Positions 18,420-19,430 are shown, numbered from the stretch's first letter. The stretch is DNA of 64,000 nucleotides from Syncephalis fuscata S228 (GCA_025786725.1 JAHLTZ010000019.1:62001-126000); one strand, 5' to 3'. Translations and numbers: made by a program. Notes: generated from the letters alone by a model not told the origin.

Positions 18420-19430
18420 ACTGAATAATAAGCATTTACTGTGTACTTGATAATTTGTGTTGACAGTTAGTAAATAATTTTTATAGCAATCAATTCTAAA
18501 TTAAATATATTTAATATCTTGCGTGCTTAATCCTTCGTATTGATATATGGTAAGTGACATCATATATTAATTAGTTATTCACAGACCATATTCCATGCGT
18601 TGTCTATTTAATAATTCGTGTTGATAGATAGTAAGTAATGCGATACATTAAGCAAATATAAACTAAATATACGTCGTGTATTGCACGTTTGATGCTGTGT
18701 TTTTAATAGCTGGTAGGTGGTGCTATACAGCAATCTATTATACACTAAACATATATTATCCATTGTATGTTTGATGGCTTGTGTTGCCAGTTAGTAAGTG
18801 AAATTATGTATTGATCAGCCTTGCATTAAATATATGTTATGCACTGTGTTTAAGGATTTGTTTTAACAGAGGGTAGGTAATATTATATATCGATTGGATA
18901 TGCACTAAACATATATAATTTATTGCGCATTTAATAATTATTGTTACTAGAACGTAAGTAAAGTCTATAGTAATTGATAATATACTAGATATAAGCCACA
19001 TATTGCATGTTTAAAAACTTTTATTAATAGTCGCTAAGTAATATTTCGTATCAGTTTACCATAAATAAATATATAATATGTGGTCTGTGTTTGACAACTT
19101 GTATTGCTAGAAAATAAATGACATTGTATATTATTGATTATAGACTAAATATATTACGTGAGTTATATTTTCAATAATTTATATTGATAGTCAGTAAGTA
19201 AAATTGTATACTATGCAACTATTCACTATACATACTCCATGTACTCTATGTCCGATAACTTGTGTCATTAGATCGCAAGTGGAATTATATACTAGCTGCT
19301 ATGCGCTAAATATATGTCGTGTAATTTATGTCTGACATTCGCCCTACTGGACGTAAGTAATATTATATACTATTGCTTTATACACTAATTATACAGCATT
19401 TACTGTATCTGTTTATAAGTATAAAATAAT
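18420..19430 (+). repeat. Diverged tandem array of 12 units of 78-82 bp, each resembling an intron followed by 3 variable nt
   Basis: GTAAGT-like hexamers at 18470, 18550, 18631, 18713, 18794, 18873, 18954, 19034, 19114, 19194, 19275, 19353. Ten of 12 are preceded by YAG plus exactly 3 nt. Confidence 0.85.

Follow-up and report, generated by a model that had tools for sequence, protein, structure and literature searches.

A decaying relic of a fungal gene family whose secreted peptides are probably encoded in single-codon exons between tandem intron copies

Positions 18416-19686 of a 64,000-nucleotide stretch of the Syncephalis fuscata S228 genome (the window; C101:62001-126000 in the assembly) are best explained as a 5'-truncated, decaying pseudogene copy of a large gene family for secreted peptides, in which exons of 3 nt lie between tandem copies of one intron. 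We put the probability of this reading, taken as a whole, at about 0.82. It draws on the anatomy of intact members, the pattern of conservation along the repeat unit, the avoidance of stop codons in one particular frame and homology among paralogs. From the sequence statistics we infer that consecutive 3-nt exons are spliced, and the family as a whole is probably spliced and translated as modelled below; secretion, Kex2-type processing and the biological role of the peptides are likewise predictions from sequence.

Results

A beheaded array in the window

The features of the relic and of its left neighbour are as follows.

17744-18415, plus strand: 672-bp high-copy, LTR-like repeat directly beside the array, which it truncates; 10006-10677 is an identical copy
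18416-18466, plus strand: 3' part of a cut-off intron unit (a partial thirteenth), with its acceptor AG at 18465-18466
18467-19352, plus strand: twelve putative 3-nt micro-exons and eleven intron units of about 77-79 nt, placed by motif location and unit HMM; micro-exons start at 18467, 18547, 18628, 18710, 18791, 18870, 18951, 19031, 19111, 19191, 19272 and 19350
19353-19424, plus strand: last intron unit, placed by the alignment of downstream modules, the family pattern YAG/NN-TAA and the letters of the window
19425-19429, plus strand: homolog of the terminal-exon start, in which AA completes the last codon (C/AA) and is followed by TAA at 19427-19429
19430-19686, plus strand: 3' UTR-like tail, homologous to the tails of other members, with AATAAA at 19659-19664

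Between 18416 and 19424 lie 12 diverged units of about 80 nt, each shaped like an intron (GTAAGT ... TTRAY ... YAG) and repeating with a period of 78-82 nt. Locating the motifs reproduced everything that the first-pass annotation had listed for this array, namely the 12 units and their period, the donors (GTAAAT, GTAAGT six times, GTAGGT twice and GCAAGT), the triplets between them (in order TTA ATG ATA CTG TTA AGG AAC TCG AAA TCA ATC GAC) and the broken sites. The spacing of exactly 3 nt between acceptor and donor is retained at 12/12 window junctions. Two donors are dead (CTAAGT at 19034 and ATAAAT at 19114), as are two acceptors (TAT before 18547 and CTG before 19350), and the terminal acceptor, which is ATAG in the family, has become ATAA in the window copy (broken AG at 19423-19424). 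An intact AG-NNN-GT with full signals is found at 8/12 junctions; damage at the remaining 4/12 compares with 6% in the family (P=0.006).

The unit HMM gave 13 matches in 18431-19412 and no match in the remainder of the 64-kb window; the partial unit matched model columns 43-79 only, at 18431-18467. Tandem Repeats Finder does not call the array, because its units are too diverged (about 65-70% alike). Identity between the window array and arrays on more than 20 other contigs is 64-77%, and since even the nearest paralogs are only about 67% identical, we regard the window copy as old and decaying.

The array begins mid-unit immediately 3' of the 672-bp repeat. The two window copies of this repeat (10006-10677 and 17744-18415) are direct, 100% identical over 672 nt and 7738 nt apart, and there are at least 652 first-look candidates genome-wide at 78-83% identity, several of them in direct pairs 8-12 kb apart. 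It is because the repeat is so abundant and dispersed, with direct pairs, that we describe it as LTR-like. It ends in imperfect inverted termini of about 21 nt, and no clear target-site duplication was seen at it. The pair may belong to a young non-autonomous element of LTR type or may be two solo copies; no long ORFs were found between them, and neither has unit-like DNA on its left. An orphan secreted-protein ORF lies at 13995-14504, between the copies. Elsewhere in the window, at 5255-5455, a 75-nt tandem repeat (2.7 copies, 81% matches) sits within a Cys-rich ORF region.

The first exon of the family, described below, has no match anywhere in the 64-kb window, and no promoter or first exon was found for the window copy. 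Since it lacks exon 1 and starts mid-unit at the 672-bp repeat, we class it as a truncated relic rather than an intact member: promoter, exon 1 and the first micro-exons were lost at the border of the repeat. The idea that the array has been decaying since the adjacent element removed its 5' exon, raised in the first-pass annotation, agrees with the missing exon 1, the abutting repeat and the broken splice sites.

At the other end the copy is better preserved. Its tail is 68-75% identical over about 310 nt to the downstream flanks of at least 20 other arrays, the block GTAGTAATAAACA is conserved in the family tails when downstream modules are aligned, and the genome yields at least 117 first-look candidates for the tail module, window 19570-19664 among them. 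The TAA at 19427-19429 is the stop conserved in the family. Read in phase 1, where a codon takes its first base from the end of one micro-exon and its other two from the start of the following one, about 80 nt away in the DNA, the 12 triplets and the tail give ..NDTVKELEINRQ-stop (N D T V K E L E I N R Q stop), with no internal stop before the conserved TAA.

This open reading would also be expected if the window copy were a still-working gene that had acquired a promoter in or beyond the 672-bp repeat and a new first exon, and LTR-like repeats often carry promoters. Against this stand the missing signal-peptide exon, the terminal acceptor AA in place of AG, nearest paralogs that are only about 67% identical and a junction integrity significantly below that of the family (8/12 versus 94%). 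Dead acceptors would simply fuse introns at the cost of one codon, whereas the dead donors CTAAGT and ATAAAT would force the retention of whole units. We consider a working gene improbable and retain the reading of a decaying pseudogene.

Splice signals are the conserved part of the unit

Searching the 29.4-Mb genome (371 contigs) with the window array gave 121 matches on more than 20 contigs, with at least 84 first-look candidates, and we estimate that the genome holds at least 80-120 arrays of 11 to more than 80 units each. In 27 loci fetched for closer analysis the unit HMM identified 725 units, always in one orientation per array. The genome search for intact arrays with their flanking exons, proposed in the first-pass annotation, recovered arrays that carry both exon 1 and the tail.

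An end-to-end alignment of units would bias the end columns, and the junctions were therefore examined with an HMM built from interior columns 9-70 only, reading the segments between successive matches. Located in this way, without the use of splice motifs, 391 of 416 junctions (94%) have the form AG-NNN-G[TC], and the exact 3-nt spacing claimed for the window array thus extends to its family. The donor is GTAAGT in 336/416 junctions (81%), the others being mostly workable sequences (GTGAGT, GTAGGT, GCAAGT and GTATGT), and the acceptor is TAG in 370 and CAG in 26. A branch-like TTRAY motif lies 15-19 nt before the AG of the unit. Splice columns are 94-100% conserved, compared with 50-90% for the columns of the unit interior, among which a YTAA at columns 33-36 is near-invariant; positions 1 and 3 of the triplet are the most variable columns of all. 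The impression gained from the window, of stable splice signals and spacing amid diverging interiors and variable triplets, is therefore borne out more strongly genome-wide, and the comparison of splice columns with the rest that had been proposed as a check comes out in its favour.

Eight recently duplicated gene pairs show the same pattern. Acceptors differ at 0/294 sites and donor hexamers at 1.2%, exon 1 differs at 1.9% and the flanks at 3.3%; differences reach 9.2% in intron interiors and 23% in micro-exon bases, both figures being inflated by mis-registered units. The contrasts in rate are significant (Fisher P about 1e-17 and 1e-32). The invariance of the splice sites between paralogs is robust. 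We make no claim of positive selection on the micro-exons, because repeat units may be mis-registered. Three pairs of family genes are near-identical (up to 99.8% identity), in inverted orientation and 11-60 kb apart: L013/L014 (C2:517000-524000 versus 535000-542000), L002/L003 (C57:473329-477181 versus 417015-420867) and L024/L025 (C57:229000-234000 versus 189000-193000). The pairs point to recent inverted duplication of large segments, or possibly to haplotigs in the assembly. A further family gene (L028, C323:44000-53999) is split by a long insertion inside the array, beyond which the units resume; its translation contains gag-like and integrase/pol-like stretches, which suggests a Ty3-type retrotransposon.

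Column-specific conservation bears on the simplest alternative, also entertained in the first-pass annotation, that the array is a plain non-genic satellite derived from one intron, with its motifs inherited and maintained by homogenisation rather than by selection for splicing. Such an origin would fit an AT-rich tandem array without an ORF, in which tools of the Tandem Repeats Finder type show nothing gene-like, and it would fit the position of several arrays at contig ends and the absence of a promoter or first exon from the window copy. Homogenisation, however, would conserve all columns equally, whereas the splice columns are held far above the interiors and the spacer is near-saturated. 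The anatomy and reading frame of the family, to which we now turn, weigh further against it.

Intact members have a signal-peptide exon and a conventional last exon

The flanks of different arrays are homologous to one another. Upstream there is a conserved TATA-like box, TTTAAATAG, and about 150 nt further on an exon that begins with ATG. This exon 1 is 94 nt long (91 or 97 nt in two members) and encodes MKLSIAVVC...VDAKPxxxRR plus one extra base; it ends in phase 1 in 35/35 modelled genes. It occurs once upstream of nearly every complete array, and 310-331 first-look candidates were found in the genome, a lower bound that includes paralogs without arrays. The intron that follows (GTATGT with TACTAAC) leads into the 3-nt exons, among which many members have a single early exon of 15 nt, and at the 3' end a last unit-like intron is followed by NN-TAA and about 250 conserved nt that close with a conserved AATAAA. 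Intact paralogs are thus organised as a signal-peptide exon, a run of symmetric micro-exons and a conventional last exon; examples are L079 (C135:458500-464600), L015 (C24:472000-479000) and L002 (C57:473329-477181). At another locus (L081, C1:496200-502000) a perfect copy of the family's exon 1 stands before unrelated sequence, and no array lies within reach; it may be another truncated member, the mirror image of the tail-only relic in the window.

Protein searches with exon 1, using an alignment of referenced translations as the query, matched solely proteins that have the family's own signal exon. Two public models, P0002 (on L073) and P0003 (on L022), comprise exon 1, cross one intron and then run into the next. 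They can be threaded onto their loci only by reading through intron, which marks them as ab initio misannotations whose deposited 'mature' sequences are translated intron. Two further public models, P0006 and P0008, were not located. Similarity between our spliced mature peptides and 19 public family representatives was no better than that of shuffled controls.

The micro-exons are probably read in phase 1

Joining the micro-exons in the phase set by exon 1 gives 3 stops in 468 codons of 23 non-redundant genes, compared with 15.3 expected; when the order of micro-exons was permuted within genes, 0/5000 permutations gave 3 or fewer. The +1 frame of the same 23 genes contains 48 stops. The depletion argues for joining and translation, since competition between splice sites cannot yield it. 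In-frame stops occur in a few modelled genes (L019, L068/L078, L077 and L082), which may be pseudogenes or mis-modelled.

The two ends of the coding sequence point to the same phase. A stop falls in the first or second phase-1 codon of the terminal exon in 20/29 modelled paralogs, and the last micro-exon ends in T, forming T/AA, in 11/20 compared with a background of 14% (P=1.5e-5). Near the 5' end, splicing the early exons (3 + 3 + 15 + 3 nt) gives RR-AVAPLAKR, RR-DVAPLAKR, RR-DVSPLAKR and similar sequences, and an intronless paralog, P0001 (placed at C1:523550-523882 with 100% identity over 111 residues), encodes RR-AVEPLAKR contiguously, matching the spliced xVxPLAKR propeptide. The phase-1 peptides are rich in S, G, P, A and R, like secreted peptides, and some are Cys-rich; the L079 gene, for example, has 47 codons and 8 Cys.

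These results bear on the remaining alternatives. A satellite could hardly account for arrays with a conserved signal-peptide exon, TATA-like box, stop and poly(A) signal, nor for bases 80 nt apart that jointly avoid stops, which is sensible only if they are joined in an mRNA; we judge a satellite origin very improbable. By the same evidence the one-codon-exon gene proposed in the first-pass annotation gains substance, in that paralogs combine a signal exon, a run of 3-nt exons and a terminal exon and avoid stops in the spliced frame.

The translation given there for the triplets, LMILLRNSKSID (L M I L L R N S K S I D), does not survive, for in the family frame codons straddle the introns. Were each triplet a codon in its own right (frame 0), the products would be very hydrophobic and rich in Leu, Val and Phe. 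Consistent with this, a single stop occurs among 634 triplets, 64% of the triplets have T at position 2, and the soil-metagenome arrays described below do appear to code in frame 0. In this genome, however, all modelled first exons end in phase 1, a frame-0 TAA interrupts the 15-nt exon of L013, and only phase 1 gives the PLAKR propeptide and the terminal stop. We also considered the absence of frame-0 stops as a proof of translation and rejected it: TAA, TAG or TGA between AG and GT (AG-TRR-GT) creates a competing donor, GTRRGT, so that their lack needs no translation, and TAY triplets are depleted as well (2 seen compared with about 6 expected). Frame 0 is accordingly a most unlikely frame for the Syncephalis family.

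Equally hard to sustain is the suggestion, made in the first-pass annotation, of a non-coding host transcript that releases intron RNAs (snoRNA-like or small-RNA precursors) and in which the 3-nt exons are meaningless spacers: the moderately conserved interiors, with their YTAA at columns 33-36, would suit it, whereas no Rfam family matched at E<=1, the predicted folds of the units are no more stable than those of dinucleotide shuffles (mean z +0.48, with no unit below -2), and the phase of exon 1, stop avoidance, propeptide and terminal stop all speak for coding.

Analogous arrays in metagenomes

A scan of metagenomes for three consecutive ATAG-NNN-GTAAGT junctions returned 36 contigs. About 20 of these, from soil, freshwater or other metagenomes, carry real arrays of 7-36 junctions, with periods of 74, 79-80, 67-77 or 85-115 nt, a G+C content of 16% to 48% and at least four unrelated intron families. 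The Syncephalis unit-interior HMM found no match in them, and we therefore regard these arrays as analogous rather than homologous. Two (L034 and L040) have signal-peptide exons of their own, which end in R or KR and in phase 0. Among 354 metagenome triplets there are 31 TAY and 7 TGY/TGG and no TAA, TAG or TGA (11.3 expected, P about 1e-6). With unrelated intron families and separate signal exons, the single-codon-exon architecture seems to have arisen more than once. One group of contigs (L058, L052, L063, L033 and L050; WNFZ/WNGA and others) has a G+C content of 16-20% and 8-37 AG-NNN-GT junctions 85-115 nt apart. In L058 a TPR-like ORF with an in-frame TGA lies beside the array, a hint of a eukaryote whose genetic code departs from the standard.

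Eleven of the contigs returned were rejected as CRISPR arrays of cyanobacterial type, in which the repeat contains TAATAGGGAGTAAGT by chance and the NNN is constant. In seven (L031, L035, L044, L054, L055, L059 and L060), which were inspected or have a period of about 72 nt, a repeat of about 37 nt (GTTTCAATCCCTAATAGGGAGTAAGTGAAATT...) holds the AG-NNN-GTAAGT look-alike; the other four (L043, L046, L048 and L053), with shorter spacings, were called CRISPR on the constant NNN alone. CRISPR repeats are thus a trap for motif-based searches for micro-exon arrays.

Discussion

The model that best accounts for these data is a gene in which a promoter with a TATA-like box would drive a 94-nt exon 1, encoding a signal peptide and an RR propeptide and ending in phase 1, with the remaining coding sequence laid out as a run of 3-nt exons, each followed by an intron of about 77-80 nt. 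The introns repeat one another in tandem, which makes the gene resemble a minisatellite. All units would be removed by the ordinary spliceosome, by way of the GTAAGT, the TTRAY 15-19 nt before the end and the YAG of each, and the codons of the mature peptide would be assembled across the introns. The last intron would open onto the NN-TAA terminal exon, with a 3' UTR of about 250 nt and AATAAA. The predicted product is a secreted peptide of 10 to 80 residues, in some cases Cys-rich, that would be cleaved at dibasic sites, and each repeat unit gained or lost would add or remove one residue. Tandem duplication as a route of intron gain, invoked in the first-pass annotation, applies here in that the introns of an array appear to have multiplied as copies of one unit.

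Full-text searches of the literature found no description of such one-codon-exon genes. Among known kinds of gene, the schistosome micro-exon gene (MEG) comes closest, and by analogy the window family can be seen as an extreme fungal variant of it. In schistosomes and tapeworms MEGs have a signal-peptide first exon, symmetric exons (multiples of three) of 6-36 nt and a longer last exon; owing to this symmetry the loss or skipping of exons keeps the frame, and alternative splicing defines MEG variation. Their products are small secreted proteins of parasites, and the families are large and fast-evolving. S. fuscata is, we assume, itself a parasite, a mycoparasite of the Zoopagales. The likeness, which extends to the signal-peptide exon, the run of symmetric micro-exons and the conventional last exon, is one of architecture only, without sequence homology, and the host is a fungus (Pkinase_fungal and DUF1749 matches). 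Unlike those of MEGs, the exons of the Syncephalis family are 3 nt long, the minimum that keeps the frame; they form runs of 50 to more than 80, their phase-1 introns split every codon and are tandem repeats of a single unit of about 78 nt, which gives the gene its minisatellite-like form.

Other systems share single features with the family. Isolated ultra-short micro-exons (1-15 nt) occur in plants and animals, the 3-nt exon of RPS24 being one example, and according to two reports 3-nt internal exons can be spliced by the normal spliceosome (PMC8831610, PMC12207440). Plant and animal micro-exons, however, are single and conserved and have ordinary flanking introns within otherwise ordinary genes, whereas in Syncephalis dozens in succession would make up the whole coding body. 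The array introns resemble introns that arise by tandem duplication or from minisatellites in sharing a recent origin from one multiplied unit. Introners, by contrast, are dispersed insertions in unrelated genes, while the Syncephalis unit, an intron plus 3 nt, would multiply in place and bring a codon each time; no terminal repeats or target duplications were seen on Syncephalis units. As at the ratchet points of recursive splicing (AG/GTAAGT), an acceptor stands beside a consensus donor and segments would be removed sequentially, but ratchet points leave an exon of 0 nt, and the exactly 3 nt found at 94% of 416 junctions carry coding signal. Finally, a signal peptide with RR and KR sites before a short peptide recalls the Kex2-processed precursors of fungi (KEP-type and pheromone-like); those known have ordinary exons, and in Syncephalis it is the motifs that suggest such processing.

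Confirmation of splicing would make this family a record, with dozens of consecutive 3-nt exons and an intron inside nearly every codon, and would challenge current ideas on minimum exon size and on the assembly of neighbouring spliceosomes. It would also show a minisatellite encoding protein in a new way, with the length and sequence of a peptide shifting by one residue per repeat. Whether arrays of single-codon exons form a general, unannotated class of genes is a tentative proposal, to which we give somewhat less than even odds: a tandem intron repeat would then serve as an evolvable template with one repeat per residue, and unequal recombination and in-frame exon skipping would diversify secreted peptides in parasitic or soil eukaryotes. 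The metagenome arrays, with their unrelated intron families, the phase-0 signal-peptide exons of L034 and L040 and triplets free of stops, speak for this proposal. For S. fuscata itself, roughly a hundred or more secreted-peptide genes would be invisible to gene finders, since standard annotation misses this layout. As the public models that we checked read into introns, catalogues of effectors and antimicrobial peptides are likely to be incomplete, a gap that would extend to environmental eukaryotes with analogous arrays. The window copy, in turn, would provide a dated example of gene death, beheaded at the insertion of a repeat, its splice sites then eroding.
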